Positions 8,300 to 48,455 of a stretch of DNA of 64,000 nt are shown here, piece after piece. Within the stretch, counting starts at the first letter, position 1, and every line of letters starts with the position of its first letter. The notes below the pieces were generated by a model, which saw only the letters and a program-made list of their open reading frames with translations, did not search any database and was not told where the DNA came from. A program made the translations under genes and the position numbers. The stretch is taken from contig JANJGN010000052.1 of the NCBI GenBank assembly GCA_026770705.1, positions 1,736,001 to 1,800,000 of the forward strand. Reading direction: 5' to 3'. Origin of the DNA: Isurus oxyrinchus. Lineage: Eukaryota.

Positions 8300-8439
8300 T
8301 CAAACAGTCTGTCGACTTCCTTTCACTGTTTGTCTCTCCCAGACACAGACTCCAGCGATAGTGATAACCACAGCCACAAGGAATATCACAGCTCGTATTC
8401 CCAGGATCAGGATCACATGCAGAATCTCTCCTCCACTGT
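8300..8439 (-). CDS. Gene A terminal TM exon: (H)SGGEILHVILILGIRAVIFLVAVVITIAGVCVWERQTVKGSRQTV*
   Basis: Acceptor ttctttctgtgtgctctctag; phase 1 matches the upstream Ig exons; long hydrophobic segment with one Arg; TGA at 8300-8302; no Tyr in the tail. Not in the ORF track. Confidence 0.8.
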
Positions 8440-9557
8440 CTAGAGAGCACACAGAAAGAAATCATCACTGACTCTCTGCTTTCAATCTCTCACTCTGGCT
8501 GAACAATCAAGCTTCATATCACTGCAACATTTGCTGTAATATTGACCCATCCACTGGGATTCAATGTGGAATGAATGTTTTCATTGTAAACACTCGAAGA
8601 GTGGACAATCGGAACTTTCCCCTTAGCGTGGAACATTGGTGAGAATGGATCATTGTGCTGTTGGACTCCCTGTCCAATGTTTCTCTCCATCGCTGTGTAC
8701 AGGATTGTGCTGTAGAAAATTCTGGAAACGTTTAGTGCAGGGTGGAAATCCATCTCGGACGTGTGTGCGAATCGGGCAGGATCGAGATGGACTCCCCCAC
8801 GGACTTACAACCCCCGCTTAATAAACAGTTCCAATCTTTACCCAGAGAGAGAGGAGAATGTGGAACTCGCTCCCACAGGGAGTGGTCGAGGTGAATAGTA
8901 GCAAATTAGGATGGGAAATTGCTTGAAAAGCTAGGAGATGCAAGGGTTAAGTGCTACCGTGCCACCACTGGTGGGAGAGTGTAACTACAGCGTGACGTTT
9001 ACATAGGCAATCCCCATTATGAACTTGGACATTGGACATCATGTGCAAAATGGGCTCTGGAAAGGTGAGAACATGATGTAAGCTTTTCACCAACAGAAAT
9101 TCCTTCGTAAACCTCTCCATCTCTCTCTTACTGTCAGATACTCAAACAACATTTCACACAGAATTACATAAGGAGGAGTTGGGACAGGTGACTGGTCAAA
9201 GGGTTAGATTTCAGGAAGCTTTTTAAAGGAGGATAGAGAGTTAGAGAGGCAGAGAGTATCTGTGAGAATCTCTGTGCATCTGGGTGTCTAATAGACTTTG
9301 CAATTTCCGCATTCTTCCATAAACTTGAAAGGGAATACAACTCCCAGAATCCATGTCAACTCTCCGGTGCAGCACTGAGGGAGGTCAGGTAACCCACGGG
9401 GGAGAATGTGTTAGTGTGTTTGTTTGTGAGTGTGTCCTTTTGTGTGCTCATACATGTGGGATTGTGTGTCTGCACGTGTCTATTTAGGTTTGTATAATTG
9501 TCTGTGTTTGTGTAGTGTTTGAATCTGAGAGAGCTGTTGAAGTCTGTGTACACTCAC

Positions 9558-9737
9558 GTTCCACAGTGATGGTTATGAACCCCTCCACTGCTCCATGTTC
9601 ATTCTCTGCCACACACTGATAGTCTCCAGTGTCCCTGGATGTAACGTGAGGAATCACCAACCACAGCTCATTGTTGGAACTTGTTCTGTTCATTGTGATA
9701 TTCAGATGTCAGGGCAGGACTCAACATGACAGATCAC
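9558..9737 (-). pseudogene. Gene A degenerate membrane-proximal Ig (C2/I-set) exon remnant
   Basis: ICHVESCP, frameshift, then HLNITMNRTSSNNELWLVIPHVTSRDTGDYQCVAENEHGAVEGFITITVE with a GTGAGT donor; DTGDYQC F-strand motif; C-strand Trp region missing and no recognisable 5' part. Confidence 0.75.
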
Positions 9738-10033
9738 AGGTTTACCAACAGGAAGTGAACAACAATTTATATTTAATGGGAAGAGAGTGCTGATTGATTG
9801 GCAAGTGGTCTCTGATTGGAGGCGGTGTTGCCATGGAAAATAATGTGTGCGAGCTGTAAAGTTTAGGCAGATTGTCTCTTCATTCAGCAATAATCAAATA
9901 AAGATCAGTTAACTTCTATCGACTGTGAAGCACTTTGAGAGGTCTGAGAATGTAGATACTGAGAACGGGCTGCACTGTCAGAGGGTCAGCGCTGAGGGAG
10001 TGCTGATGTAGAATGAAAGGTGTCGGTACTTAC

Positions 10034-10330
10034 CTTACACAGTTAGTATGAGGGTCCGCTCCGATGAAACAGATGGATATCTCACTCTGCAGCTGAGAGT
10101 GTGTCCGTGGTGTTGGAGTGATGGGATCAGGGTCAGAACAGAAGTATAGGTCAGAGTGACACCATGCTGAGTTACAGTGTTTGAGACTGATCCAGGTACA
10201 TCAGTGGCAGTGTCCCAGGTTAAGACAGGTGCTGCTGTTCCATTGCACGTTGTGTTGAAGGTGCAGCTTACATCCATACGCTTTCCTGCAATAATTTCAG
10301 CAGGGAATATCATGGGTTTATCTGTGAAAT
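10034..10330 (-). CDS. Gene A Siglec C2-set exon, ending in a premature TAA
   Basis: DFTDKPMIFPAEIIAGKRMDVSCTFNTTCNGTAAPVLTW...LSCRVRYP...LTV*; 297 nt, phase 1-1; paralogues read CAA (Gln) at the stop position. Confidence 0.9.
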
Positions 10331-11143
10331 CTAACAGACAGAGAATGGATCCTTTTGGAGAAATATAACGTGAAACATCAGTTCAAATAGAAACCACAGT
10401 CCCACAAGAGAAAGCACTTTTACAAGGATGATATCAGAACTGAGAGATTACAACGATCAGGAGAGAATTTCCTATTTTCAGACTTAGTGGATTTTCTGTC
10501 TCTCAGATGAATTCACTTCCACTTTGAGACAATTGAACTGACAATCCCAGGTGAGGGTGGGGGAGCAGCTCACAGTTCCTGACACACTGGCTTGTTACTT
10601 TCTCTGAAATCTGCCAGATTTAAATTCTATCCTGTTCCCAGCAGGAGAGAATCCATTTGAACCAATCACTGAACCGGCATCTAAAACAGATGATCAGGTT
10701 ATTGATCACATTGCTGTTTCTGGGAGCTTCCTGTGAATAAATTGGCTGCTGTGTGTCCCATATTACAACAAGGGCAACATTTCAAGAATTATTTCATTGG
10801 TTGTGAAACCATTTGCAACGTACAGAGGTGTTGAAAGGCGCTATAGAAATGCGAATCTTTCTTTTGTCGATATGGAAAACTGTCAAACAGGGTTAGGGAG
10901 ATCGATGGGAGTGGATAACCTGATAACATTGATGGACACAGTCAATACTTTTAATCATTGATATTAAAATGAGTATTAGAGGTTGCTTTAGGACTGAACT
11001 GGAAGCTATCACCAGGTTATTGAGAATCAGACAGTGTGCTATAATAAGCTGTGTTTTGTGTTAATATGTAAACGTCACAGTTTGCGTTATTTCCCATTGA
11101 GTGTTGAATGTGAATTGTTGAGTAATTATAACACAGCACTTAC

Positions 11144-11512
11144 CAGAAACGTGAAGCTGGGTTACAGGGTAATAGTTATGGCTCGGACCATTGTCAAATT
11201 CTATCCTGAAAAAATAAGGTCCTGCATCTTCCCGTCTGATGTTGTTTATAATCAGGGAACAGTCGCCATCTTTCAGGTTTCCAGACAGCCAGGTCCGATG
11301 GTGGAACCGTGGTAACTCGTGACTGTGATCCTTGGAGTGAAAGGCAATGGGAGCCCAGGGAATCTGTTTCTCATTATTAAACCAGAGTCCACCTCGCGGT
11401 TGGTTTTCCAGACACGATGGATAACTGTAATGACAAGGAATCTGTACACACGAACCTTCCTGCGCTGTCACCTCTCGTGGAGTGTCACCGTTCCACTCTT
11501 GTGAGGGTTCAA
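11144..11512 (-). CDS. Gene A Siglec V-set exon V2 (essential Arg present, YFFRIE)
   Basis: AG/GT-flanked 369-nt phase 1-1 exon; EGSCVQIPC, GDCSLIINNIRREDAGPYFFRIE Siglec V-set motifs. Confidence 0.92.
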
Positions 11513-11569
11513 CTGGGGAGAGAAATCTCAATATTTAACTCTGGATGGTTTGTGGATCCACTAGACTCA

Positions 11570-12400
11570 AATTTACAGATGAGGCTGAATTGGGGGGATG
11601 GTCAATACTGAGGAGGACTACAACAAATTATTTTGGCAGGAAGAATAGAAAAACAGGATATTATTTAAATGGAGAGAGGCTGCTGAATGCAGTACAGAGG
11701 GATCTGGGTGTCCTTGTACATGAATCACAGAAAGTCAGCATTCAGGAACACCACGGAATGAGGAAGGCAAGTGGAACGTTGGCCTTTATTGCAAAGGGAT
11801 GGAGTATAAAAGGAGGGAAGTCTTGCAACAGCTGCACAGGGTGAGATTATATCAGGAGCAGTGTGTACAGTTCTGGTCTCCTTACTTAGGGAGGGATAGA
11901 CTCTGCATTGAAGGCAGTTCAGAGGAGGTTCACTGGGCTGATTCCTGGGATTAAAGGGTTTGTCCTGTGAGGAAATGTTGAGCAGGTTGGGCCTGTATCC
12001 ATTGGAGTTTAGAAGAATGAGGGGTGACCTTATAGAAACATATCCGATTCCGAGGGGGCTTGACAGGGTGGATGCTGGGAGGATGTTTCCCCCTCGTGGG
12101 GGAATCTAGAACCAGGGAGCACAGTTTCGGAATGAGGGCTCTCCCATTCAAGACTGAGATGAGGAGGAATTTCCTCTCTCAGAGGGGCGCTAGCCTGTGG
12201 AATTCTCTTCCCCAGAGAGCAGTGGAGGCTGGGCCATTGAATAGACTCAAGGCTGAGTGAGGCAGGTTTTTGATCGACAAGGGAGTCAAGGGTTTGGGGA
12301 ACAGGCAGGAAAATGGAGTTAAGGCCACAACCAGATCAGTAGAGCAGGCTGGAGGGGCCGAATGGCCTGCTCCTGTCCCTATTTCTTATGTTCCTACATT
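11570..12400 (+). mobile_element. CR1 LINE 3' fragment in the V1-V2 intron (mirrored at 40985-41810)
   Basis: QRDLGVLVHESQKVS...LWNSLPQRAVEA motifs and CR1 tail. Confidence 0.85.
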
Positions 12401-12469
12401 CTTACCTTCTTAAAATATTAAAGCTGCAGAATAAACATGCAAGTGACTGACCCGCTCGACCCACCTTCC

Positions 12470-13435
12470 ATCAGGGGCTGGAGGAGGTTACACAGATAGG
12501 GAGGATTGTGGGGGCTGTAGGAGGTAACAGAGATAGGGAAGGCTGTAGATACTGGAGGAGGTTACGCAGAGAGGGAGGGTGGTAGGACCTGGAGGAGGTT
12601 GCAGAGATAGGGAGGGCTGTAGGGATTTGAGGAGTTTATGGAGATGGGGAGCGTGTAGGGACTGGAGGAGGCTGCAAGGGCAGAGAGGGTTTTAGGGGCA
12701 GGAGGAGTTTACAGGGATAGGAAGAGTTGTAGGGGCTGGACGGATTGCAGAGGTAGGGAGGGTTGGAAAGGCTGGTGGAGGTTCCAGAGGTAGGGAAGGT
12801 TGCAGGGACTGGAGGAGTTTACAGAGATGGGGGAGTTTTTGGGGCAGGATGGGGTTACAGAAATAGGGAGGTTTGTAGGGGCAGGACGAGGTTAGATAGA
12901 TATGGAGTGTGGCTGGGGCTGAGGGAGGCTACAGAGATAGGGAGGGTTATAATGGCTGGAGGAGGTTACAGAGATAAAGGAAACTCTTAGGGACTGGAGG
13001 AGGTTACAGAGATAGGGAGGGTTGTAGTGGGCTGGAGGAGGTTACAGAAATATAATGGGTTGTAAGAGATGGACCAGCTTACAGAGATAGGGAGAGGTAT
13101 TCGGTCTGGAGGAGGTTGCAGAGATAGGGGAGGTTGTTAGGACTGGAGGAGGCTACAAATATCGCGAGGGTTATCGGGGCTTGAGGAGGTTAAAGAGATA
13201 GGGAGGGGTGTTGGGTCCAGAGGAGTTTGCAGTGATAGGAATGGTTTTCGGGATTGGAAGAGGGTACTGAGATAGGAGGGTTGTAGGGACTGGAGGAGTC
13301 TCCTGAGATAGGGAGGGTTGTAGGGACTGGAGGAGGCTCCTGAGATAGGGAGGGTTGTAGGGACTGGAGGAGGCTCCTGAGATAGGGAATGTTGCCGTGG
13401 ATGAAAATAAAGGAGGAGATTACTGTAATAGGGAG
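12470..13435. repeat. ~37-bp degenerate minisatellite (ggggctggaggaggttacagagatagggagggttgta)
   Basis: Tandem G-rich units adjoining an L2-like LINE; shorter mirror copy at ~39795-40090. Confidence 0.8.
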
Positions 13436-13439
13436 GAAC

Positions 13440-14390
13440 AATATTCAAAAATTTGGACATTGAGACTTTGCTTGACCAGGAGCCAGTCTCGGTCATCGAG
13501 CAGAGCGGATGATAAGGGAACGGGACTAGGTGTGAGTAAGGACGTGGTCAGCAGTTTTGGATGGCCTCAAGTTTATGGAGTGTAGAGCGTGTGTTGGAAC
13601 AGTCGAGTCTGGAGGTAATGAAGGCGTGGATGAGGGTTTCAGCAGCAGATGAGCTGAGACAGGGTGATGTCATGCGATGTTACGGAGGTGGAAATAGACG
13701 GTGTTAGTGAGGGCGCAAAATGGAGGCCGGAAGCTCATCTCAGGATCAAATGGGACAACAAAGCTGTGAACAGATTGGCTTCAATCTCAGAGAGCTGCCA
13801 GGGAGAGGAATGGAGTTGGTAGCGAGGGAACAGAGTTTGGAGTGGGGAATGAAGACAATGGCTTCAGTCTTTCCAATATTTAATTGGAGGGAATTTCTGC
13901 CCATCCAGTACTGGATGTCGGATAAGCAGCCTGATAATTTAGCAGCAGTGGAGGAGTCGAGAGAGGTGGTGGTGAGGTAGAGCTGGGGATCCTCAGTGGA
14001 CAGGTGAAAACTAACACTGTTCAGATGATGCTGCAAAGCCATTGCAAGTGATTCTCTGGCTACGATGAGATGGATAAGAATGGAGCCAGGGGAGAGCAGT
14101 CCCACCCAGCTGGACGACAGTGGAGAGGTGTTGGAGGAGGATGGTGTGGTCGAGCGTGTCAAAGGCTGCAGACAGATCGAGAAGGACGAGGAGGGAAAGT
14201 TGACCTTTGTCACAGTCACACAGGATGCCATTTGTGACCTTGATAAGAGCTGTTTCAGCACAGTGGCTGGGGTGGGAACCTGATTGGAGGGATTCAAACA
14301 TGGAGTTCCGGGAAAGATGGGAACGGATTCGGGAGATGGAAACACGTTCAAGGACTTTGGAGGGGAAAGAGAGGCTGGAGATGGGACGGG
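13440..14390 (-). mobile_element. L2-like LINE RT fragment (mirrored at 38840-39790)
   Basis: RPISSL..SKVLERV, HCAETALIKVTN, LLVLLDLSAAFDTLDHTILL, LQLNIGKTEAI motifs. Confidence 0.85.
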
Positions 14391-14665: not shown

Positions 14666-15043
14666 CAGAAACGTGAAGCTGGGTTTCAGGGTAATAGTTA
14701 TGGCTCGGACGATTGCCAAATTTTATCGTGAAAAAATAAGGTCCTGCATCTTCCCATCTGATGTTGTTTATAATCAGGGAACAGTCGCCATCTTTCAGGT
14801 CTCCAGACAGCCGGGTCCGATGGTGGAACTGTGATAACTCGCGACTGTGACCCTTGGAGTGAAAGGCTATAGACCATTTAGACCATTTGTTCCGTATGTA
14901 TCTTCTCATTTTCCAGATTCCGACCTGTGGTTTCTTTACCAAATCTGATGGATAACTGTAATGACATGGAATCTGTACACACGAACCTTCCTGCGCTGTC
15001 ACCTCTCGTGGAGTGTCACCTTTCCACTCTTGTGACAATCCAA
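14666..15043 (-). CDS. Gene A Siglec V-set exon V1 (essential Arg replaced by Thr, YFFTIK)
   Basis: 378-nt phase 1-1 exon, VGLSQEWKGDTPREVTAQEGSCVQIPC...PETQLHVS. Confidence 0.92.
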
Positions 15044-15299: not shown

Positions 15300-16958
15300 A
15301 CAATGCATTTGGAATTCCACTGTCCGGGGCATTGGGTTAACTTGCTGATTTTGTTTTAAATCTAACATCTATTTTTGGTCTGTTGCCTTAAAGGGAGTGT
15401 GACTGGGAGTCAGGTTAATTAGGAATTTTAGGAGTTATGATAGCAGTAATTGTAGTTATGTATGTGCTTGAAATCTTTTATTTTGATGACAAATATGTTA
15501 ATTTATTGTTTTAAATCTCTAAAGGTATGGGGGAGTTATTGCTTCTGAATTAAGTGCACACATCTCATAATAAATACAAATTGCAAAATCATTATGATAG
15601 TGTGACCAGGTTTCTCTCAAGGACTTGGTCTGCCTGGCACACATCACCTGCCAAGTGATAACACTGTTGTAATATGCCTTTCAGGGACAGCAGCATGACA
15701 TCACTCGAGGGGAAGTGTGTCATGTGATTTTTAGGAACTGGTGTTCGCTTAAGTAAGTTCTATGTGTATTTGTGTGCATTAGGCAAAAGGTCTATCTTTA
15801 AGTTCAAGTTTAGTTTGTATTTCTGTATTTGGGTGTTGAGAAAAGGGTGAACTTGTGTTAAAAAGAAGCCAGCATTCCATTGAGGTTTAATGACTGTTGA
15901 AGGGAAGTCAAAACAAATACAAGGTGTAAGAAACTGTGCTGTTGCCTAGCAACAGTGATGCAGAGGGTAGGACTCACAGAGAGAGAGAAAAACAGAAAAG
16001 TACTTTCTGTTCTGTTGAAAGGAGTTGCCAGGAGAAGCAGCAAAGGAGCGGGACAGATAGTCAGTCCCAAAGTAAAGAAGAAGCCAAAACTATAGAGTTT
16101 GACAGGAGAAAGGGCCCAAGAAAACCTTCTAGTCAAATCTGGAAAAGGCCCTGTAAAGTGAAGTTAAGAGTGAGGAGCAGAAGAAGGCTTCAAGCATAAA
16201 GGGAGAAAGCAGCAGGACACAGGCCTAAAGCAAAATAGGCTTGCGAGAAGCCAGAAGATCCTGGGAGACACCACAGGTTGGTGACTCATTACTACGGCCA
16301 TGTGAAGCCATGGTGTTCCATTGACACGGCTGAGCATTGGAGAGACAGGGCGTGGAAGGAAGGCTGAATGCACGTGGCGATCCAGGGGGCAGGAACATGG
16401 GAAGGAGAGTTTGAAATAGTGAAAGTGGACCCTTGTGGAAGGTGTCTGAGTGAAAGTGTCATGTTGGAGGAGACTCCAAAGTGAGTTCTTGGAGAGTGGA
16501 GATTGGAAACTCTCATATGAAAGAAGCTTTTCAGTGAGACTGGTTGGCTCACAGTGTAACAAGCGTCTGGGGACAAATGAGACATAGAATTTGTTTCAAG
16601 TGGGCTCTGCCACTTGCTTTCAGAATGTGGCATCCCTGACCACAGGTCGTCTATTGGTTTACATCGACTGTGTACTTAGTGTGAACATGAGAGTATAAGA
16701 TAGTTACAGTAACTTGTGTTCTACTTATGAATCTTTAAAGGGATAGATCTGGGTGAATCAGTAATGTCATATAGTTTGTCTTTCCTAGTTTAATAAATGT
16801 TTTATTCTTTTGTTAGAAGTTCATCAGATGACTCCTGTGACTCTGTTCAGTAGCCGCACTCCACATTCCTAAATAAAAAATAAAAGTTAGGACCTATCAA
16901 GCTGAGTTCCACCCTGGGATCTGACTTGCCCAGTAGTAACATCAGCTGGGATGGTAAC
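15300..16958 (+). mobile_element. LTR-like repeats (two adjacent pieces each ending ...taaca), mirrored at ~36236-37930
   Basis: tgttg...taaca ends, AATAAA boxes, no coding capacity. Confidence 0.45.
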
Positions 16959-16984
16959 ACCATCCAGTCCAAGTCTCACTTTGG

Positions 16985-19900
16985 CCTGTGAGCAGAACAC
17001 AGCTCACACAGTTTGGCCGCAGGTGTCTCCCAGCTTTCTATCCTTGTATATCTGTTCTTATGTCCCTATTCTAAATAACTGAACCCACAATGTATTTACC
17101 CAATTCCGTATCAGTGGTTGGTGCCTTTATATCATTATAAAAACACAACATGGTGATCAGCGGTGGCCAAACATTCTGGCAGCAAGATTCAGTACAGGTA
17201 TGACGTGGTGAACAGCCTTAGATCGAGCTACATGACATGAGACGACCCTCGACGCTTTGGTCAGACCACAACAGAGACACAGCATCAGAGAGGGTTGAAA
17301 TTGCAGTGTACTGACTGCTCAGGAAACCTTTGAAGACACAGTGACGGGAAAGAGCTCAAGTAAAGAGCTGGGGAGCAGACGGATCCCTCGTGGTGAGATT
17401 ACAGCACACGGCCTGTAGGTCAGTGAGTGGGACAGTGTGTATCGCCAGGACCAGCAGCGGGTTAGCTCAGTCAGGGAAGGCGAGTGACCAGAGTGTGGGC
17501 TGGATCGATAGTGAGCGAGGGAGAGTCAAACACACAAAAACCATTATAAAAATCAGCCCAGAGAAGTTAGTGATTATAACGGGCGGCTTCGAGATTGCTG
17601 AACAGCAAATTGAATAAAAAACAAAGACTCCATTACTCCGTGGTGTGTTCCTGCCACAACCCGTCTCCGTGGGCGGAGCTTCGGAAAAGCACACAAAAGG
17701 GGCTAAAGCGACACTCATCCCAGATCCTGTAGGAGAAGGAAGGTCAAAGGAATATTGTCAGAATGTCCACAAAATTCCCCAGTTTGAACTGGGATGTAGC
17801 TGACCGACTATCTGAATTCAGAATGTTTAAACAGCGTACAGAGCTCTGGTTTCCTGATTCAGGTGTGACTGAACCAGACGAACCACCCATAAAAATTCAC
17901 CTCACGATTGGGAATGAAGGTCTACACAGGCTGAACACGTCAGGATTAACAGCAGAAGAGCGAAAGGATCCCCAATAGATATGGACGACATTGGAAGACA
18001 GGTTCAGAATCAGGTGAAACTCCATATTCATCAATTAGAGTTTATGTCATTTCATCAGCCTACACAATCCATAGACCACTTCATCAGCCGATGTAGAGAA
18101 AAGGGTACGCACTGTGATTTCAAACACAGAGCCTGCAGACACAGTTGTTGAGTTGGTGATCGCATCCACTCCCATGGAAGCCTTCCAGAAAGATCTGCTA
18201 GATAAGACCAAAACCTATAGCATTGAAGAGCTACTCAAGGATGGACATAAATACGAAGTGATCCTCGCAGGTCAACGAAGATTACAGGTCCTCAGTACAA
18301 CATAAGTTGTTGACACACTCACTAGAACATCCAAACCTAGTGAGACGTGTGGAAGGTGTGGCCTTCTGCAGGCACCAAGGAAATGCCCAGCTTTCCACCA
18401 ATCCTGCAAGGCTTGTGGCAGAAAGGGCCATTGACAGTGGCAGGGCACTAGTGCAAAGGCTGATGCAGCTACAAAGAGCCGTGCACTGATCCAAACAGAC
18501 CCTACACAACGGGGAACCTTCAATCAATAAGAATGACCATCCGCTATCCCATCAGGAACATATACATGTGGTGACTGACAAACCAGGAAATGGCGATGAT
18601 GTACATGGTGAGACGAGGAGCGGTGATCGATATTCCACCTCTCACACATATCCTGACGTGGCTTGCCAATAAATTGTGGATTGTTGTCCTTAATGATCTC
18701 TCTGGGCACATCAAATAAACTGAAAATGTCCCAATGGGGTGGGATTTTCTGGCCCCACCCACTGCCAGGATTGCCCGGTCCGGCCAAAAGCCAATGGATT
18801 TATATTTGTCCCTATCTCCCAGGCAGGTCCCACCATGACTGGGCCGGAAAACCCCGGCCTAGAGTTTGTGCAACATTTGTGCTCAACGTTTTGTGCAATT
18901 GTTGAACAATTTCACACCTTTTACACCATCAATCTAATGGAGAACAGATGCCGTCACATCACCCGCACTATTGGCCAAGATTCCAATTATCTGCCCTGAG
19001 AAAGTTGCTACCTCTCCTTTATTGGCCAAGATTGACACAAGGGCAAGTGCCAACATTCCCCTCCCCCCGACCACCCCAGCAAATTTTCAAAGACATGTAT
19101 CCAAGGACATGGAAGTCCATGGGGAAACCTACTGCTGTGTACAACACTTCACCAACTCCATGTGCGGAATACATAGTCCTGGGGTGCAAGTACAATCAAT
19201 CCTCCTGGGTGTCACAGATGTTCTACATCGTGGAGACTAAAGGCTGAGCAATTGCAAGTCTACCGGCATGCGGTGACCTCACACTAGTGACAATCCATGG
19301 AATCTGTCAGACCTCACATGGGTCAACCTCAGAAACTACCCCATCAACTCAGTTCATGGACATAACATTGAAATATGCAGAAAGTTTCAACAGTATTTGC
19401 AGTTTCAAGGGAGCTGCAACATTACACCTGCAGGAGAATGCAAGTCTGTCAATTGATCCAGTACATTTAGCACAACAGAAATGCCAGCATCTACAAGAGG
19501 GGACAGTGAAAAATTCTACAGGAAATGTGGAAATATCATTGAAAGGGTGGCCTGATTCAACTTGATGTCATCGGGATAAGCGAGGCATCTCCCAGGGAGT
19601 CATTTTTAATGGCAGGCATCGCATCATACCAGAACCTTTGTGATGATATATTCTTCAACAACTTCATCCTTCACACATGGGCACAGATCAGACAAGGAGA
19701 CTCCCAAGAGATACAGTCCCTGGCCGGGTATAAACAATGACCTTGAAGTCATTGTAGGGAAGTTCGAGGCTTGTCAAGAGGATGAGCCAAGTCAACACAA
19801 AGAACCACTGATTCCACAGGAAATTCCTGCCCATTCTTAGTCCAAAATCACATCTGAATCCTTTCATGTCCATGTCACTGACTTCATCGTCGTCGACAGC

Positions 19901-22034: not shown

Positions 22035-22074
22035 CTTGGAGAAGTGACAGGAGGAAGTAAGATTTCCCGATCAC
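22035..22074 (-). pseudogene. Gene A signal-peptide exon with start codon mutated to GTG: (V)IGKSYFLLSLLQ
   Basis: Matches the four plus-strand leader exons except ggacaGTGatc in place of ggacaATGatc; GT donor intact. Confidence 0.85.
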
Positions 22075-23170: not shown

Positions 23171-23199
23171 CAAACTAAAGTAGTGACAAGGGTTGAATA

Positions 23200-28942: not shown

Positions 28943-28947
28943 AATTC

Positions 28948-32830: not shown

Positions 32831-32870
32831 ATGATCGGGAAATCCTACTTCCTCCTGTCACTTCTCCAAG
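32831..32870 (+). CDS. Gene B signal-peptide exon MIGKSYFLLSLLQ
   Basis: Acceptor at 32787-32788, ATG at 32831, phase-1 donor GT at 32871; joins in frame to the V exons. Confidence 0.85.
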
Positions 32871-33899
32871 GTAATAACATCGTCAGCTCGGACAGTTTTA
32901 TGGCTAATAGTCTTTGTAAAAGATCATTCTTATTGAGCTGTGATTGGGAACCGATTCAGCAGTGAGCCAGTGTACAAACTCACACCAAGTCCCATTCACC
33001 CATCACCCCTGTGCTCACTGATATACACTGACTCCCTGTCTGACAGCAGAATTGGAGGAGAGCAGAGATCTCAGAGGGTTTTAGGGTTGGAGGAGGTTAC
33101 AGGGATTGGGAGTGTAGAGGGGGGATGGTGGGGTAAGAAATCGATGATGAGAATTTGAAATTTGAGTCATTGCTGGACTGGGAGCCAGTGTAGTTCAGCC
33201 AGTGACAGGGGAGCGATCGGCTGAATAGAGAATCAGGAACACCAACTGGGGGATGAAGTCTATCCTGATGCTGGAACTCGGATAACAATGCCCTGAAATT
33301 TTGTGTCTTTTGCTGATTTTGTCAGAATTTCCCATGAAGACAACACAGCAGCTCCTAGAATAGACAGGCTGTTCAGTGTCACACTTCTGTCCATTCTCAC
33401 CATGCTAGATACTTCAATAAGGGAGCAAGATAACTGAAAGAGAGAAGGAAGGTAAAGCTGTCCGTGTGTAAAACTGTCAAATATTCTGAGTTATCATGAT
33501 TGTTTCTGATCTGCTGCAGAGTTTAAAGTTCTCAGAACATTAGCACTTTGCAGCTCAGAGAGAGACCATTGACTCACTGCCTGAAAGGCCGGTGGAAGCA
33601 GATTCAACAGGAACTTTCAGAAGGGGAACTGGATAAATACTTGAAGGGGACATTTTGCAGGGCTGTGGAGGAGAGAGCAGAGGTTAGAGTGGGATTAATT
33701 GGACAGATCTTTCAAAGGCCCAGCACAGGCTCGATGGGCCAAATGGCATCCTTCTGATCCGGATCATTCTACAATCTGATAAATTAAGCCCCACATCAGT
33801 AACTCTTCAGGCTCCTGCTGCAGGGATGGATCTTTGAGAAGGACAGGGAACAAGAGGTTCCTGGTATCATTTTCATATTTCTTGACAATTACATAAGTG

Positions 33900-38175: not shown

Positions 38176-38562
38176 TTGGACTGTCACAAGAGTGGAAAGG
38201 TGACACTCCATGAGAGGTGACAGCGCAGGAAGGTTCGTGTGTACAGATTCCATGTCATTACAGTTATCCAGCACTTCTAGTAGGGAGAGCACGTGTCGGA
38301 ATCTGGTATGTGAAATGGTACACATGGAATACATGGAATACAAGGTCTAGAGGGACCATAGCATTTCACTCCAAGGATCACAGTCGCGAGTTACCACAGT
38401 TCCACCATCGGACCCGGCTGTCTGGCGACCTGAAAGATGACGACTGTTCCCTGATTATAAACAACATCAGACAGGAAGATGCAGGATATTATTATTTCAG
38501 AATAGAATTTGACAATGGTCCGAGCCATAATTATTACCCTGAAACCCAGCTTCACGTTTCTG
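38176..38562 (+). pseudogene. Gene B V-set exon V1 with nonsense codon (CGA>TGA at 38211-38213)
   Basis: 387-nt phase 1-1 exon, VGLSQEWKGDTP*EVTAQEGSC...YYYFRIEFD; the four paralogous V exons have CGA (Arg) at this codon. Confidence 0.88.
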
Positions 38563-38839
38563 GTAAGTGCTGTGTTATAATTACTCAACAATTCACATCC
38601 AACACTCAATGGGAAATAATAGTGTTTGATTTGCTTGTTTTTTGGCCATGTTAACCAGCGTCACTATTTTTAATGATTTGTCTATTTCTGCTCCCAGATC
38701 CATGAGCTTATTGTGTGTGATTGAATCCACATCATAGCTGTAACGTAAACCGAGCTGAGGGGTGATGACACCTCCCCCCCGAGTGAAGTGTCTCCTCCCC
38801 ACTACACCTTCCACCCCTCACACTGTCCATGTAAACCCC

Positions 38840-39790
38840 CGTCCCATCTCCAGCCTCTCTTTCCTCTCCAAAGTCCTTGAACGTGTTTCCATCTCCCGAA
38901 TCCATTCCCATCTTTCCCGGAACTCCATGTTTGAATCCCTCCAGTCAGGTTCCCACCCCAGCCACTGTGCTGAAACAGCTCTTATCATGGTCACAAATGG
39001 CATCCTGTGTGACTGTGACAAAGGTCAACTTTCCCTCCTCGTCCTTCTCGATCTGTCTGCAGCCTTTGACACGCTCGACCACACCATCCTCCTCCAACAC
39101 CTCTCCACTGTCGTCCAGCTGGCTGGGACTGCTCTCCCCTGGCTCCATTCTTATCCATCTCATCGTAGCCAGAGAATCACTTGCAATGGCTTTGCAGCAT
39201 CATCTGAACAGTGTTAGTTTTCACCTGTCCACTGAGGATCCCCAGCTCTACCTCACCACCACCTCTCTCGACTCCTCCACTGCTGCTAAATTATCAGGCT
39301 GCTTATCCGACATCCAGTACTGGATGGGCAGAAATTCCCTCCAATTAAATATTGGAAAGACTGAAGCCATTGTCTTCATTCCCCGCTCCAAACTCTGTTC
39401 CCTCGCTACCAACTCCATTCCTCTCCCTGACAGGTCTCTGAGATTGAAGCCAATCTGTTCACAGCTTTGTTGTCCCATTTGATCCTGAGATGAGCTTCCG
39501 GCCTCATATCTGCGCCCTCACTAACACCGTCTATTTCCCCCTCCGTAACATCGCACGACATCACCCTGTCTCAGCTCATCTGCTGCTGAAACCCTCATCC
39601 ACACCTTCATTACCTCCAGACTCGACTGTTCCAACACACGCTCTACACTCCATAAACTTGAGGCCATCCAAAACTGCTGACCACGTCCTTACTCACACCA
39701 AGTCCCATTCCCTTATCACCCGCTCTGCTCGATGACCGAGACTGGCTCCTGGTCAAGCAAAGTCTCAATGTCCAAATTTTCATCTTTGTT
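38840..39790 (+). mobile_element. L2-like LINE RT fragment (mirror copy)
   Basis: LLVLLDLSAAFDTLDH motif; reverse complement of 13440-14390. Confidence 0.85.
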
Positions 39791-40984
39791 TCCTCACTAT
39801 CTCTGTAAACTCCTCGTTCCTCCTCCAGTACCTACAACCATCCCATTCTCTGTAACCTCTTCAAGCCTCTGCTGCTTCCCTATATCTGTAAAATCATCCT
39901 GCACAACAAACCTACCAATCTCTGCAACCTCCTCCAGCCACTACAAACCTCCCTAGCTCTGCAAACTCCTCCATACCCTACACTCTCCCAATCTCTCTTA
40001 AATTTTCCAGCCCATACAACCCTCCCTATCTCTGTAACTCCTCCAATGACTACAACCTTCCTTCTCTCTGTAACCTCCTCCAGCCCCTCCAACCCTCTGA
40101 GGTCTCTGCTCTCCTCCAATTCCAGCCTCTTGACCATCCCCCGGTCCCATCACTCCAACATCGGCGGCCGTGCCTTCAGCTGCCTGGGACCCGAGCTCTG
40201 TAATACCCTCCCTCAACCCCTCTCCGTCCCTCTCTCTCACTCTCTCTATCACTCGGTCTCTCTCTCACTATCCATTTCATCCCCCTTTGAAGATTCTCCA
40301 TAACACCGACCTCTTCTGGTCAGCTGTCGCTAATATCTCCACATGTGTCTGGGTGACATACTTTGTTTTATGACGCTCCTGTGTAGCACCTTGGGGTGAT
40401 TTGTCATGTTAAAGTTGTTGTGAAAATATAAGTTGTTGCCCTTTGACTCTCGACCCCAGATCGAGTCTTATTTTTGAGGGAATGTACAACCTCCTTAGAT
40501 TTCTGACCAAAGTGTCATTTGATTATTTTTATTGAGCGAATGCCAAGCCCCGATACCGAGTGAGAGCCTCCTCATTTGCTGAGTTTAAGGTGATGAGTCA
40601 GCCCCTTAGTCCATAGAGGGGATTCTCCTCGGTAATGTACAGCCTTGTTTGTGTCTCTCCACAAGCGCATGAGGGATTTGTACAGAGGCTGCAGCGCTGG
40701 AGGGGGTCTGCACAGGGGTCCTGGCCTGTCCTGAGCTGGTTTTAGCAAGGACCACTCTGGCCTTGGCAGCTGAAAGCCAGCCATTGGACAGACGGGGCCT
40801 GTCACAAGGAGCCTGTTAGTCACTCCCCCCCGTGTCTCCTGTGCTCGGATCCAGACCATGTTGGCTGGTGGATCTGGCTCAGGAAGGGTCCTCCCCATGG
40901 GACCCCCAGATGGAAGGTGGGCCGAGCGGGTCATTCACTTGCATGTTTATTCTGCAGCTTTAATATTTTAAGAAGGTAAGAATG

Positions 40985-41810
40985 TAGGAACATAAGAAAT
41001 AGGAACAGGAGCAGGCCATTCGGCCCCTCGAGCCTGCTCTCACTGATCTGGTTGTGGCCTTAACTCCATTTTCCTGCCTGTCCCACAAACCCTTGACTCC
41101 CTTGTCGATCAAAAACCTGCCTCACTCAGCCTTGAGTCTATTCAATGGCCCAGCCTCCACTGCTCTCTGGGGAAGAGAATTCCACAGGCTAGCGCCCCTC
41201 TGAGAGAGGAAATTCCTCCTCATCTCAGTCTTAAATGGGAGAGCACTCATTCCGAAACTGTGCTCCCTGGTTCTAGATTCCCCCACGAGGGGGAAACATC
41301 CTCCCAGCATCCACCCTGTCAAGCCCCCTCGGAATCGGATATGTTTCAATAAGGCCACCCCTCATTCTTCTAAACTCCAATGGATACAGGCCCAACCTGC
41401 TCACCATTTCCTCACAGGACAAACCCTTTAATCCCAGGAATCAGCCCAGTGCACCTCCTCTGAACTGCCTCCAATGCAGAGTCTATCCCTCCCTAAGTAA
41501 GGAGACCAGAACTGTACACACTGCTCCTGATACAATCGCACCCTGTGCAGCTGTTGCAAGACTTCCCTCCTTTTATACTCCATCCCTTTGCAATAAAGGC
41601 CAACATTCCACTTGCCTTCCTCATTCCGTGCTGTTCCTGAATGCTGACTTTCTGTGATTCATGTACCAGGACACCCAGATCCCTCTGTACTGCATTCTGC
41701 AGCCTGTCTCCATTTAAATAATATCCTGTTTTTCTATTCATCCTGACAATATAATTTGTTGCCATTCTCCTCAGTATTGACCATCCCCCCAATTCAGCCT
41801 CATCTGTAAA
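40985..41810 (-). mobile_element. CR1 LINE 3' fragment (mirror copy)
   Basis: Reverse complement of 11570-12400. Confidence 0.85.
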
Positions 41811-41870
41811 TATCGGGTTCAGTGGATCCACAAACCATTCAGAGTTAAATATTGATATTTCTCTCCCCAG

Positions 41871-42236
41871 ATGAACCCTCACAAGAGTGGAAAGGTGACA
41901 TTCCACGAGAGGTGACAGTGCAGGAAGGTTCGTGTGTACAGATTCCGTGTCATTACAGTTATCCATCGTGTCTGGAAAACCAACCGCGAGGTGGAGTCTG
42001 GTTTAATAATGAGGAACGGGAAACATCGTCTATAGCCTTTCACTCCAAGGATCACAGTCACGAGTTACCACGGTTCCACCATCGGACCCGACTGTCTGGA
42101 GACCTGAAAGATGGCGACTGTTCTCTGATTATAAACAACATCACACGGGAAGATGCAGGACCTTATTATTTCAGAATAGAATTTGACAGCAGTAATAGTT
42201 ACAACTACTATCCTGTAACCCAGCTTCACATTTCTG
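41871..42236 (+). CDS. Gene B Siglec V-set exon V2 (essential Arg present, YYFRIE)
   Basis: 366-nt open phase 1-1 exon flanked by AG/GT. Confidence 0.93.
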
Positions 42237-42607
42237 GTAAGTGCTGTGTTATAATTACTCAACAATTCACATTCAACACTCAATGGGAAATAACACAAAC
42301 TGTGACGTTTACATATTAACACAAAACACAGCTTATTATAACACACTGTCTGATTGTCAATAACCTGGTGATAGCTTCCAGTTCAGTCCTAAAGCAACCT
42401 CTAATACTCACTTTAATATCAATGATTAAATATATTCCACTTCCATTGATCACTCTAATTGTGTCTAACAGTCTATCAGTATCGTTGAAACATCTCAGTT
42501 CTGATATCATCCTTGTAAAAGTGCTTTCTCTTGTGGGTCTGTGGTTTCTATTTGAGCTGACGCTTCATGTTATATTTCCCTAAAAGGATTCATTCTCTGT
42601 CTGTTAG

Positions 42608-42904
42608 ATTTCACAGATAAACCCACGATATTCCCTGCTGAAATTATTGCAGGGAAGCGTGTGGATGTAAGCTGCACCTTCAACACAACGTGCAATGGAA
42701 CAGCAGCACCTGTCTTAACCTGGGACATTCCCACTGACGTACCTGGATCAGTCTCAAACACTGTAACTCAGCATGCTGTCACTCTGACCTATACTTCTGT
42801 TCTGACCCTGATCCCATCACTCAAACACCACGGACACAATCTCAGCTGCAGAGTGAGATATCCATCTGTTTCATCGGAGCGGACCCTCGTACTAACTGTG
42901 CAAG
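42608..42904 (+). CDS. Gene B Siglec C2-set exon
   Basis: 297 nt, open; DFTDKPTIFP...VSCTFNTTCNGTAAPVLTW...LSCRVRYP...LTVQ. Confidence 0.92.
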
Positions 42905-43064
42905 GTAAGTACAGACATCCTTTATTCTACATTGGCCATTATAGTCCACACGCTACACAGTAAAAACCCATAAAATACAGTTTGTTTAACAACAGATCAT
43001 CTGCTTTTATTGATAAAAATTCACCTCTGACATTGCAGAGCTCCCTTCCTACTGACCCCCCGAC

Positions 43065-44300
43065 NNNNNNNNNNNNNNNNNNNNNNNNNNNNNNNNNNNN
43101 NNNNNNNNNNNNNNNNNNNNNNNNNNNNNNNNNNNNNNNNNNNNNNNNNNNNNNNNNNNNNNNNNNNNNNNNNNNNNNNNNNNNNNNNNNNNNNNNNNNN
43201 NNNNNNNNNNNNNNNNNNNACATACGCACACACATACACAGATGCACACACACAGACAGAGATACACATAGATGCACACACAGAGACACATACACACCGA
43301 TGCNNNNNNNNNNNNNNNNNNNNNNNNNNNNNNNNNNNNNNNNNNNNNNNNNNNNNNNNNNNNNNNNNNNNNNNNNNNNNNNNNNNNNNNNNNNNNNNNN
43401 NNNNNNNNNNNNNNNNNNNNNNNNNNNNNNNNNNNNNNNNNNNNNNNNNNNNNNNNNNNNNNNNNNNNNNNNNNNNNNNNNNNNNNNNNNNNNNNNNNNN
43501 NNNNNNNNNNNNNNNNNNNNNNNNNNNNNNNNNNNNNNNNNNNNNNNNNNNACTAACACAGACACACACACGCACACACACATACAGACACACACACACA
43601 GACATACGCACACAGACAGACACACACACATAGACACACACAAACATCCACATCGACAAACACAAACACACACACACACAGACATATGCACACACACACA
43701 CACACACAGATGCACTCACACAGACAGAGACACACATAGTTGCACACACAGAGACANNNNNNNNNNNNNNNNNNNNNNNNNNNNNNNNNNNNNNNNNNNN
43801 NNNNNNNNNNNNNNNNNNNNNNNNNNNNNNNNNNNNNNNNNNNNNNNNNNNNNNNNNNNNNNNNNNNNNNNNNNNNNNNNNNNNNNNNNNNNNNNNNNNN
43901 NNNNNNNNNNNNNNNNNNNNNNNNNNNNNNNNNNNNNNNNNNNNNNNNNNNNNNNNNNNNNNNNNNNNNNNNNNNNNNNNNNNNNNNNNNNNNNNNNNNN
44001 NNNNNNNNNNNNNNNNNNNNNNNNNNNNNNNNNNNNNNNNNNNNNNNNNNNNNNNNNNNNNNNNNNNNNNNNNNNNNNNNNNNNNNNNNNNNNNNNNNNN
44101 NGCAGACACACACACACACATACAGACACACACACACAGACATACGCACACACACAGACACACACACACATCCACATCGACTAACACAGACACACACACA
44201 GGAATACGCACACACACAGACACACACACACAGAGACACACAAACATCCACATACACAAACACAGACACATACACACACACACAAACATACGCACACACA
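43065..44300. repeat. (CA)n-rich simple repeat containing three runs of N
   Basis: Directly visible; the N runs could hide sequence. Confidence 0.9.
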
Positions 44301-45377
44301 GTTCCTGATCTCTCAGTTCCGCACTGGATCACTCTGGATCACTGTCCTGGTTTTTGGGCTGTGTTGAAACATTCAGTTTGGACTCTCTTTAAAACCGATC
44401 TCTTTGACAAAGCTTTTGGTGAAACAAACATACGAACACAGGAATGAGGAGCAGCAGGAGGCCACTCAGCCCCTCGAGCCTGTTCCACCTTTCCATAAGG
44501 TCATGGATGATCTGATTGTAACCTCAACCCCACATTCCCTGCTCACCCTTGATGACCTTTCACCCCTTTGTGAATCAAGAACTTATCAAGCTTCACCTTA
44601 TTCTCCCTGTCAAAATGGACAATTTCATCTTTTCCCACGTTATACACTATTTGCCAGATTTTGCCCATTCACTTAAAACTCTGTGTCACTTTGTAGGCTC
44701 CTTATGTCCCCTTCACAAGGTCATCTGTCCCTAACATCACCTCAGCTGACTCAGGGTCTAGACAGGTTTTAGTCAACAGTGAACAGGCAGAAATTGGAGT
44801 TTGATTAATAACCAAATATTTCATTGATAAAATTATCAATAATTGTTACATTGAAAAGGGTGACCTGTATTTATTGAATGATCAGATTGTCCCAAAACAC
44901 TTTACAGTCAATGAGATATATTTGAAGCAATGTCATGTTGTAATGTAGGAAATACGGCACCAAAATGTGCACAGCAAGATCCCACACAAGGTGACAGTGA
45001 TCTGATAATGGATTATTTTAGTGAGGTTGGTTGATACGTATATAGAAATCACATGTATAGGGTGGGTCACTAATGTCCATTTAGTGAGGAAAACCTGTCC
45101 ATTTTAACAGGTCTGGGTGTATATGTGACTCCAGTCTGTAACACCAACATGGTTAACTCTTACCTGCCCTCTGAACTGGTCTCCCAGTTTGGGACAAACC
45201 AGTGGTTCAGGAGGAAGACCCCCCACCACCTTCTCAAGGGGAAACTAGGGATGGACAATAAATGTCAGCATTGCCCGAGAATGAGTATTTAAACACTGAG
45301 TGAGTGTATCGCTTCTCGAGATACATCGGAGCATCATTGTAAACCTGTAGTGCAGTAATTAATGGCTGTTTTTACAG

Positions 45378-45474
45378 GTAGAGACTCCAGTAAATGGACA
45401 GTAGGATTGTTCACGGCTGGGATCATGTTGAGTGTTTTACTGGCTGGAATCTTCATCTTCATCTGTGTGAGAAA
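45378..45474 (+). CDS. Gene B TM exon: GRDSSKWTVGLFTAGIMLSVLLAGIFIFICVRK
   Basis: Acceptor tttttacag; phase 1 to phase 2; uncharged hydrophobic helix followed by a basic stop-transfer; GTAAGT donor. Confidence 0.88.
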
Positions 45475-45989
45475 GTAAGTCTGAAGATTTAACTTGATTT
45501 TAATATAAACATTTGCTTCAATGCTCTTTCCTTAAGTCGGTGATTGTTTCCCTTGGGATCAGCACCAGGTCCCTCTCTGTAAGTGATCCCTCTGTCCACT
45601 ATGATCCGGAGAGAATCTTTCATTGTCCTGTATCCAGGTAAACAATCACGAGACCCAGAGATTCCTCACTCTGCACGATTACTCCTGGATTGTATCAGGT
45701 CACCTTGTGATTCCACACAAGCGGAGTGACCACACCCCGATGATTGGTTCATTCACCGGGAACGGCTTTGCAATGTTTCAGGGACTTGAATAAGTAACTG
45801 CACATTCCCACGTTGTATCTGCCTCTCTCTGATTTAGATTCACAGGGATGATATCAGAACTGAGAGGTTATAACCATCACAAGGATTGAACAGTCTGGGT
45901 AGTGGGACTAACTGGACAGTTTTTACAAAGGGCCAGCACAGGCACGATGGGCTGAGTGGCTTCTTCCTAAGAAGATTTTAAATCCCTTC

Positions 45990-46443
45990 ATCGAATGTGG
46001 TTGTCACTGGTGAGGCCGCTATTAATTGCCCATCCCTAATTGCCCCTTGAGAAGGTGGTGGTGGGCTGCCTTCTTGACCCGCTGCAGTCCATGTGGTGTA
46101 GGTACACCCACAGTGCTGTTCAAGAGGGAGTTCCAGGAGTTTGACCTAGCGACAGTGAAGGAACGGTGATATATTTCCAAGTCAGGATGGTGAGTGACTT
46201 GGAGGGGAACTTCCAGGTGGTGGTGTTCCCATGTGTCTGCTGCCCTTGTCCTTCTAGATGGTAGAGGTCGCGCGTTTGGAAGGTGCTGTTGAAGGAGCCT
46301 TGCTGAGTTGCCGCAGTGCATCTTGTAGATGGTACACACACTGCTTCCACTGTGTGTTCATGGTGGAGGGAGTGAATGTTTAATGTGGTGGATGGGGTGT
46401 GGATCAATCGAGCTGCTTTGTCCTGGATGGTGTCGAGCTTCTT
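45990..46443 (-). mobile_element. LINE 3' fragment
   Basis: WNSLLNSTVGVPTPHGLQRVKKAAHHHLLKG C-terminus; same family as 50145-50890. Confidence 0.8.
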
Positions 46444-46577
46444 AATTCTGTGCTTTGTGCAGAAGTGATTTAAAGAGACAGTCCAGTCGTTGGTGTAAGG
46501 TTACAGAGGGCTCTGTGTCTGTGCTGCACTGACTCTCTGCTATATGATAACCACAGTGTGATATTGTGTTATTGCAG

Positions 46578-46659
46578 GAGAAAGACAGTGACGGAGGAGA
46601 GAGTTTCAGGGACCAGTGACATTGCATTGACCCCCAGTCCACTCTCTGTGAAACACCAG
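46578..46659 (+). CDS. Gene B cytoplasmic exon 1: (K)RKTVTEERVSGTSDIALTPSPLSVKHQ
   Basis: Acceptor ttattgcag; phase 2 to phase 0 links the TM exon and the terminal exon in frame. Confidence 0.8.
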
Positions 46660-46794
46660 GTACAGGAGCTGTTTACACTCACTCCCAAGCTTCAATCTCA
46701 GTGTGTAGACAACACATGTCCCAGATTCCCAGCCCAGTTACCCACTGATTTGTACCTGTGGAGTCAGCAATGGTTCAGTATCGTGCTGTCTCTC

Positions 46795-47551
46795 TGTTAT
46801 AACACAGCAACTGGTAAAGGCTGTTGTTAGAAATCCCAGAGGGAAACTTTAAATAACTGTCATAACCTATATTTCCCAGTGGAATGTGTGAGATGCAGCT
46901 CTAAATTCAGGAATAAGACCATCAGTTCTCGAGATGGGTTCATATCAAACTACATGAGACATTTATTAATTTACACAAGTTAAACATATGCACATGGCTA
47001 AAAACTAGTATTATCATAACTTTAACAAATTCCCAAACTAACCTCCTCTAAGACAACCCATAGACTTTAAGCAGACACCCAGGCAAAGCATTTTCACCTC
47101 ACAAATTCCAAATGAGGTTCCTTTCACTTTGGTTCCTTTGCAGACAGGTGTAGGATTACAGCTGCTTTGATGTTACAAGCCTCTGCTCTGCACACACAAA
47201 ACTGCTCAAGTTATACCCAGCACTTCTATTTGAATGTAAATTCTCATTGTATCATCAGGACCTTTGAACTCCAAATCTTCTAACAATAAATCCCCTTTCA
47301 TTGTCTCAATTTTATTAGTAATATAAATGTTGATTGGTTTAACATTTCGCCCCCAGACATTGAATGCTCTATTTAAAAATGCAAATTACCACTTTACCTC
47401 TTTGTTTACATCTCAAGACTACTAGACATCCAAGTACCCAGACTGGCTGGCTTTAGTCCAATTAAAACACACACAAACACACCCACAGACTGAACTTCTG
47501 TCTAAATAGACAATTTCCAATTACATTACATACATTAATAGATTCATAACA
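46795..47551 (-). mobile_element. Solo LTR-like element
   Basis: tgttat...ataaca inverted ends; related copy at 52570-53394 (shared ggaataagacca, aaatcccagagggaaa, aattaa.acacac). Confidence 0.6.
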
Positions 47552-47679
47552 CTCTGTCTCTGTCCCTTCATCTCTATCCCTCTCTCTCATCCTCTCTCTG
47601 ATTACAAGGTTCATGTTATTGAGCCTCACACCAGGCACCTGTGTGCAGAATCCAAGCCGTCACTCGCCAGAGCCATTAC

Positions 47680-48058
47680 CGAGGGAGTGCGGGACTGACA
47701 GAGGGTCAGTACTGAAGGAGTGCTGCACTGCCGGAGTGTCAGTACTGAGGGAGTACTGCACTGCCGGAGGGTCAGTACTGAGGGAGTGCTGCACTGTCGG
47801 AGGGTCAGTACTGAGGGAGTGCTGCACTGCCGGAGGGTCAGTACCAAGGGAGCGCTGCACTGTCGGAGGGTCAGTACTGAGGAAGTGCTGCACAGTCGGA
47901 GGGTCAGTACTGAGGGAGTGCTGCACAGTCGGAGGGTCAGTACTGAGGGAGCACTGCACTGTCGGAGGGTCAGTACTGAGGGAGCACTGCGCTGTCGGAG
48001 GGTCAGTACTGAGGGAGTGCTGCACTGTCGGAGGGTCAGTACTGAGGGAGCACTGCAC
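47680..48058. repeat. 33-bp minisatellite
   Basis: About 11 units in the last intron of gene B. Confidence 0.95.
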
Positions 48059-48206
48059 ATGCCTTAGGTGGTTTCTATCATAAGACATGGGAGAGAGAGT
48101 TAAACCCACTGAGACACGACTGACACTAACCAGGCTGCACAATAATTTAACCCTATCAGTGCCAGTAAATGATGTGAGGATGTCTTCTGTTTCCATTTCT
48201 CTGTAG

Positions 48207-48455
48207 GGTAAACAGAACATGCTGATTACTGAGCCCCGGAACACAACCAGAGACACAACTAGCGAGGGGGAGACCCCAGCTCCCCGGGGTCTCTCTGAAG
48301 GTCCAGTGGGAGGCGATGCTGGACATGGGAACGCTGACAATCCCGACGAGCTTCTCTACGCCAATCCCCAAGTCTTCAGGGTGCCCAGTGGTGATGGGAC
48401 TGTCCACAGGGAAGAGGAGACGGAATACGCACAGATCAGATTCAAGCGAAACTGA
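48207..48455 (+). CDS. Gene B terminal cytoplasmic exon with Tyr motifs ELLYANP and TEYAQI
   Basis: Acceptor tttctctgtag; phase 0; GKQNMLITE...DELLYANPQ...EETEYAQIRFKRN*; resembles CD33-related Siglec and L-MAG tails. Confidence 0.88.
   Translation, partial: GKQNMLITEPRNTTRDTTSEGETPAPRGLSEGPVGGDAGHGNADNPDELLYANPQVFRVPSGDGTVHREEETEYAQIRFKRN

Follow-up and report, generated by a model that had tools for sequence, protein, structure and literature searches.

Does a shark carry paired Siglec-like receptors, in which neighbouring genes combine common ligand-binding exons with unlike signalling exons, and can both members of such a pair still be made? The question is raised by a stretch of 64,000 nucleotides of the Isurus oxyrinchus genome (assembly GCA_026770705.1, contig JANJGN010000052.1, positions 1,736,001 to 1,800,000 of the forward strand), which we refer to as the window and number from its first letter. 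The window holds two Siglec-like genes, A on the minus strand and B on the plus strand, together with part of a third, gene C (Table 1). We found that A and B are neighbouring genes with common ligand-binding exons and unlike signalling exons, and that sharks use and conserve both types of end. We consider it probable that the locus represents a Siglec pair made by inverted duplication, with unlike signalling ends, in which the activating-type copy is most likely dead and gene B needs to skip its first V-set exon.

Inverted Siglec-like genes with different 3′ ends

Comparison of the window with itself showed that genes A and B lie head to head as the two arms of an inverted duplication, ~11-13 kb long and 88-97% identical, from which four matching arm segments were recovered, in agreement with an initial annotation that a model had made from the letters of the sequence. 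The 5′ ends of the two genes lie ~9.5 kb apart, and both arms stop right past the exon for the C2-set immunoglobulin (Ig) domain. Within the arms, 2 kb are extra in the A arm only (20825-18818), and a minisatellite is of unequal length in the two. The initial annotation had A and B share leader, V1, V2 and C2; these exons are indeed duplicated, but the leader of A starts with GTG and V1 of B contains a TGA. Between the two genes, 8 of the 97 residues of the C2 exon are different (92% identity; ~95% at the DNA level), and so is about 1 residue in 5 of the V2 exon (~95% identical at the DNA level).

Beyond the arms, a self-search found only a 33-bp minisatellite in common between the 3′ parts (8200-10033 and 44102-48500), as expected from the earlier description of the 3′ exons as unrelated. 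The same search found no second copy elsewhere in the window of either the Arg-containing transmembrane (TM) exon of gene A or the tail exon of gene B. That A and B are duplicates and that their 3′ ends are unrelated is real, far beyond chance. In gene A the TM exon (8439-8300) is an open frame that reads as first described, with a hydrophobic stretch of 29 residues, an Arg 10 residues into it, and a 12-residue tail free of Tyr. Gene B had been credited with a neutral TM and a tail bearing LLYANP and TEYAQI. Both motifs and their exons are present, and the phases of the TM, cytoplasmic and tail exons (1>2>0) are compatible, but the proximal LLYANP does not have the hydrophobic +3 residue of an immunoreceptor tyrosine-based inhibition motif (ITIM) and is no canonical ITIM; it fits YxN. 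The distal motif, TEYAQI, is of the form TxYxxI.

All searches, and with them the family assignment, were made exon by exon. All five V exons (5/5) match the Pfam families V-set (39-49 bits, cut-off 26) and Ig_CD22 (34-50 bits, cut-off 27), and every C2 exon matches C2-set_2 (36-38 bits, cut-off 21). When a V exon was compared with solved structures, the top 17 rows were all Siglecs (E 2.6e-14 to 8.4e-11), namely Siglec-5, MAG, Siglec-8, CD33, Siglec-10, sialoadhesin and Siglec-7, and the V domain was about equally close to Siglec-5, CD33 and MAG in that search; for a C2 exon, domain 2 of MAG and of CD33 was among the best matches. Siglecs bind the carboxylate of sialic acid through an Arg on the F strand (YFFR motif). 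A V2, B V1, B V2 and the V exon of C all carry this Arg, which aligns with that of Siglec-5 (yffrve) and MAG (yyfrgd). The Siglec Cys pattern, CxxxxC on strand B plus a Cys on strand E, is also found, with qegsCvqipC and gdCsl aligning with the Cys residues of Siglec-5. Pfam, Cys pattern, F-strand Arg and structure matches thus all agree with the proposal that the genes are Siglec-like. HMMER returned 33 representatives at E<1e-30, and all that were named are elasmobranch; they come from Lamniformes, Carcharhiniformes, Orectolobiformes, Heterodontus, Heptranchias, Pristiophorus and many rays, under the automatic labels Siglec-7, -8, -10, -12, -13, -14, CD33-like and MAG-like. The nearest proteins are all elasmobranch, with Carcharodon carcharias closest, so that the guess of a shark genome was right.

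Three further observations concern the arms. The C-C′ loop of V1 (14860-14950 and 38270-38360) is hypervariable and of unequal length in A and B (KMRRYIRNKWSKWS vs YVKWYTWNTWNTRSRGT) within a near-identical framework, and RNA contigs of run X18 contain another V1 loop (…HLVEKTRVGI…). A retroelement with gag-like open reading frames occupies the first intron of both arms (16565-18748 and 34447-36630), and therefore was inserted before the A/B duplication. The 33-bp minisatellite, which reads …TDPPTVQHSLS… in one frame, occurs in both orientations at 28816-30600, 6290-6990, 47575-48170, 31590-32030 and 63797-64000, including the A-B spacer, and may be a substrate for rearrangements.

Coding state and transcription of genes A and B

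The Ig exons of genes A and B have AG/GT borders and are of phase 1. At the 5′ end of gene A, the position of the initiator is taken by GTG (22074-22072), with an in-frame stop upstream; B and the three copies of the cassette in C have ATG here. The ATG of an alternative leader frame (MKYLGV… in some models) reads AAG in gene A. At the other end of the ectodomain, the last full codon of the C2 exon is TAA (10037-10035; …ACT GTG TAA G/gtaagt, the slash marking the border), where B, C and all homologues have CAA for Gln. Because it has no ATG and carries this TAA, gene A cannot make an Arg-TM receptor as assembled. The initial annotation's view of A as an activating receptor gene is accordingly not supported in this assembly, with the frame closed before the TM exon is reached; a charged-TM member with an open reading frame is found in intact paralogues and orthologues in other sharks, and not in gene A. 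In this assembly gene A, which lacks the initiator ATG, closes its C2 exon with a nonsense codon and keeps no more than a relic of its third Ig exon, is most likely a pseudogene, possibly one that is still transcribed. The C>T change behind the TAA also gives rise to a possible new donor, GTAAGG, 5 nt upstream of the usual site; its use was considered and rejected, as RNA joints use 10034.

All exons of gene B are open except V1. Skipping of V1 would preserve the frame because this exon is of phase 1 at both ends, and, as its exons read, gene B is predicted to encode a receptor only if V1 is skipped. No reading frame spans the three gaps in the intron between C2 and TM. Shark models P0151 and P0185 run from C2 (…LTVQ) directly to GRD(S/A)SKWTVGL…, so no exon is needed within the gaps.

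For transcript evidence, RNA-type contigs of four runs were compared with 7700-13699; such contigs cannot show absence. The joint of V2 to C2 (11144 to 10330) was found in three runs, that of C2 to TM (10034 to 8439) in two, and that of the relic third Ig exon to TM (9558 to 8439) in one, run X19. All three joints have GT..AG ends, lie on the minus strand and fall exactly on the predicted borders. The 8300-8439 type of exon, on whose splicing to Siglec Ig exons in some paralogue or species the initial annotation had made its reading depend, is so joined in RNA and in intact RefSeq models from four shark species. The X19 contig is collinear with the relic exon of gene A, with 3 differences in 264 nt, which suggests that an orthologue of gene A is transcribed. 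Separately, a high-depth contig of run X10 over the 3′ untranslated region of the TM exon (8100-8300) has at least 6 differences from the window within 100 nt, a sign that another place in the genome holds a paralogous Arg-TM gene with strong expression.

Conserved signalling modules and rival explanations

Exon by exon, the window is 94-97% identical to proteins of C. carcharias, as fits a shark near or among the lamnids, and the TM exon of gene A is 96% identical to intact copies in that species. The initial annotation had suggested a search for intact Arg-TM Siglecs in other chondrichthyans, and RefSeq models of this kind were indeed found for Carcharodon, for two species of Scyliorhinus and for Chiloscyllium. 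In C. carcharias, P0165, P0166 and P0169 have one V domain and P0168 and P0172 have two; the others are P0160, P0163 and P0174 of S. canicula, P0138 and P0006 of S. torazame, and P0024 of Chiloscyllium punctatum. The intact models end …LTVQ-D-SGGE(I/N)L(H/D)VI(L/Q)ILGIRAVIF…, with P0024 reading SRGEILHVILILGIRAGIF instead. Their LGIRA core is invariant, and LGIRAVIF is found in all but P0024 (LGIRAGIF). Among the 275 related proteins fetched, 18 contain the motif LGIRA[VG]IF. The Arg-TM exon is thereby conserved in three shark orders, Lamniformes, Carcharhiniformes and Orectolobiformes; no relative outside sharks was detectable in the searches made. XP_041037236.1 and XP_041037143.1 (C. carcharias), XP_038668956.1 (S. 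canicula) and XP_072325011.1 (S. torazame) have the same leader, V, C2 and Arg-TM exons as gene A, at 94-97% identity per exon for the Carcharodon models, but are intact where gene A is broken. RefSeq shark models begin with the leader MIGKSYFLLSLLQ and carry one to four V-sets; their automatic labels (Siglec-7/12/13/14 or CD33-like) imply no orthology with the mammalian numbers.

The other module is also found in further genes. P0016, P0151, P0179 and P0185 have the TM and tail of the B type, and P0151 and P0016 among them are single-V. In the family the tail consensus is LLYA[S/N]INF…TEYAQIRFQ, with a canonical proximal motif in the paralogues; the LLYANPQVF variant is what gene B shares with several genes of lamnids (P0016, P0151, P0179, P0185). 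The tail of a turtle Siglec (P0055, Emydura), DLHYASVDFSK…TEYSEIRLK, has the same order of motifs and the same 23-residue Tyr-Tyr spacing, a likeness that hints that the tail module may be old.

From these features we propose that the window belongs to a cluster of Siglec-like genes, very large in this shark, whose copies would be born and die as it evolves. An inverted duplication would have copied the 5′ cassette, the leader, the V-set exons V1 and V2 and the exon for C2, and each of the copies A and B would feed its own signalling module. That of A, a conserved Arg membrane helix with a 12-residue tail, is of the type expected to pair with an acidic adaptor that bears the immunoreceptor tyrosine-based activation motif (ITAM), and that of B, a neutral helix with a two-tyrosine tail, is of the type expected to recruit SH2 phosphatases or adaptors. 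By analogy with known receptors, the partner of the Arg helix would be an acidic helix in an ITAM adaptor, of the FcR-gamma or the DAP12 type, either of which would suit where the Arg lies; a literature search on DAP12 in cartilaginous fish gave nothing usable. The phosphorylated B-type tail would, by the same reasoning, recruit SH2 proteins, and opposing signalling, an adaptor and a ligand for the shark pair are likewise inferred.

Several points weigh against this account. The lesions of A and B are known from one assembly, and single-base errors or a null allele, as in human SIGLEC16/16P, are possible. The link between ectodomain and tail in gene B crosses the three gaps and rests on scaffolding. 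Position 10277, at which gene A has a private Met and the other copies have Val, differs from gene A in the C2 contigs of all four runs (4/4), and because of this mismatch the C2 contigs probably derive from paralogues rather than from gene A itself.

One alternative is that A and B are both dead members of a birth-and-death family, with no functional pair at this locus. The nonsense codon in B V1 is in keeping with this, as is a B-like C. carcharias model that begins inside V1 and has no signal peptide. The ratio of nonsynonymous to synonymous substitution (dN/dS) between copies, at 0.5-0.9 for the V exons, could be read in the same way; for C2 it was 0.59-1.41 (8-10 differences), and these values were too coarse to show positive selection. 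We nevertheless hold this alternative to be unlikely: gene B has open frames in its remaining exons, an intact leader ATG and compatible phases, the phase 1-1 V exons allow V1 to be skipped in frame, and single-V models with the gene B tail (P0151 and P0016) exist.

It seems to us quite improbable that gene A is a working activating receptor, with the GTG and TAA due to errors of sequencing or assembly, or to the gene being polymorphic and the assembly showing one null allele. Several independent lesions would have to be explained away, namely two lost ATGs in two leader frames and one nonsense codon. The third Ig exon has decayed, the private Met at 10277 appears in no RNA contig, and the A-like C. 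carcharias model P0188 is leaderless too. These outweigh the fully open TM exon with its close match to intact C. carcharias copies, the intact splice sites, whose type is the one that RNA shows in use, and the open frames of V1, V2 and the remainder of C2. P0188 starts at V2 and the B-like P0185 starts inside V1, and the two together fit old damage to the 5′ end. That the inverted arm is an assembly artefact, a mis-join of haplotypes or paralogues, can hardly be credited even with assembly gaps nearby and a highly repetitive family, given arms that differ by 5-12% and by indels including the 2-kb insertion, hypervariable loops and lesions, that run into unrelated unique 3′ sequence with no gap between them, and that have separately annotated A-like and B-like counterparts in another species, C. 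carcharias.

Flanking features and relation to known paired Siglecs

Gene C is a third copy, downstream of B (53968-62271), with its 3′ end beyond the window. Near the start of the window lies the last exon of a hepcidin-like gene. In human, hepcidin lies next to MAG and CD22, and the hepcidin-like neighbour may mark an old synteny for the Siglec cluster.

Table 1. Coordinates of the features of the window, in window numbering.
Feature	Position	Strand	Remarks
Gene A leader-type exon	22035..22074	-	VIGKSYFLLSLLQ; initiator GTG instead of ATG
Gene A V1 exon	14666..15043	-	open V-set; F strand YFFT, Siglec Arg replaced by Thr
Gene A V2 exon	11144..11512	-	open; YFFRIE
Gene A C2-set exon	10034..10330	-	acceptor 10330 and donor 10034 set by RNA joints; in-frame TAA
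Gene A third Ig exon, relic	9558..9760 (approx.)	-	frameshifted; C-terminal half alone readable; without phase-1 acceptor; donor 9558
Gene A Arg-TM exon	8300..8439	-	SGGEILHVILILGIRAVIFLVAVVITIAGVCVW and 12-residue tail ERQTVKGSRQTV, then stop; phase-1 acceptor
Gene B leader exon	32831..32870	+	MIGKSYFLLSLLQ; phase 1; intact ATG
Gene B V1 exon	38176..38562	+	TGA in frame at 38211-38213 (CGA in A); rest open; YYFRIE
Gene B V2 exon	41871..42236	+	open; YYFRIE
Gene B C2-set exon	42608..42904	+	open; acceptor by homology with RNA-supported 10330 of A
Gene B neutral TM exon	45378..45474	+	phase 1 to 2
Gene B cytoplasmic exon 1	46578..46659	+	phase 2 to 0
Gene B tail exon	48207..48455	+	LLYANP and TEYAQI; stop codon; ends ...DELLYANPQVFRVPSGDGTVHREEETEYAQIRFKRN
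Three N gaps	43065-43219, 43304-43551, 43757-44101		inside impure (CA)n tract, B C2-to-TM intron
Inverted arm segment	23171-20825 vs 31739-34081		88% identical
Inverted arm segment	18818-13103 vs 34376-40086		92% identical
Inverted arm segment	12477-10944 vs 40904-42436		95% identical
Inverted arm segment	10457-10006 vs 42481-42932		94% identical
Gene C 5′ cassette, three in tandem	53968..59078	+	~1.77-kb spacing; intact ATG leaders at 54577, 56344 and 58109
Gene C V exon	61207-61575	+	open
Gene C C2 exon	61975-62271	+	open; insertion of long interspersed nuclear element (LINE) type after it
Hepcidin-like gene, last exon	388-504	+	…QRQKR/MSRQRPCRFCCHCCNWREPNETCGICCRY-stop; eight Cys after furin-type site (slash)

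Human Siglec-12 has two V-set domains, and the shark genes resemble it in carrying tandem V-sets ahead of C2 domains. Unlike in Siglec-12, one V exon is defective in each of genes A and B (A V1 without Arg, B V1 with a stop). A parallel in layout was drawn by the initial annotation with human SIGLEC11/16, which lie head to head at a distance of ~9 kb and have 5′ exons that are alike and an activating allele that does not function (PMC5701461). This likeness stands for the layout and for the broken activating copy: A and B are also head to head, with 5′ ends ~9.5 kb apart, similar ectodomain exons and unlike signalling ends, and the activating-type copy A is broken, as is human SIGLEC16P beside SIGLEC11. 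It does not extend to lineage, arm length or number of V-sets. The pair is of shark lineage, its similar arms measure 11-13 kb vs ~3 kb in human, it has two V-set exons, and its charged residue is an Arg in an exon without a detected relative outside sharks.

In SIGLEC5/14, the activating member has a TM Arg. These genes form a pair of inhibitory and activating receptors whose ligand-binding domains are near-identical (PMC4042635). The shark pair is similar in having an inhibitory-type and an activating-type end on near-identical ligand-binding exons; it differs in that SIGLEC5/14 are tandem, primate-specific and of proven function, whereas the shark pair is inverted and its function is surmised from its parts.

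A study of fish Siglecs, which covered bony fish, states that CD33-related, inhibitory Siglecs are missing from the genomes of fish (PMC7226832). We found no paper describing Siglecs or Siglec pairs of sharks or other cartilaginous fish in the literature searched, where paired 'brake and accelerator' Siglecs are described only for mammals. The question raised by the initial annotation, whether the shark system evolved independently or is very old, is answered in part. As a tentative history, which we regard as possible and no better than that, CD33-type Siglecs bearing an inhibitory tail with two tyrosines would have been present in the jawed-vertebrate ancestor beside hepcidin, in the MAG/CD22 neighbourhood; sharks would then have built a dedicated Arg-TM activating module, kept it for well over 100 million years and, through local duplication in tandem or inverted form, repeatedly paired it with copies of the inhibitory kind. 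If true, ancestral CD33-type Siglecs would overturn the view that fish lack CD33-related Siglecs (PMC7226832).

The value of the window is reduced by the broken state of its activating copy and by the automatic annotation that the family already has as Siglecs. Together with the intact relatives, it reveals a mammal-like design of paired Siglecs in sharks. It is a clear example of how such a pair forms, by inverted duplication with different 3′ modules, and of how the activating member decays, in parallel to human SIGLEC16P. It thereby makes testable the idea that pathogen-driven Siglec pairing may be a general vertebrate solution.

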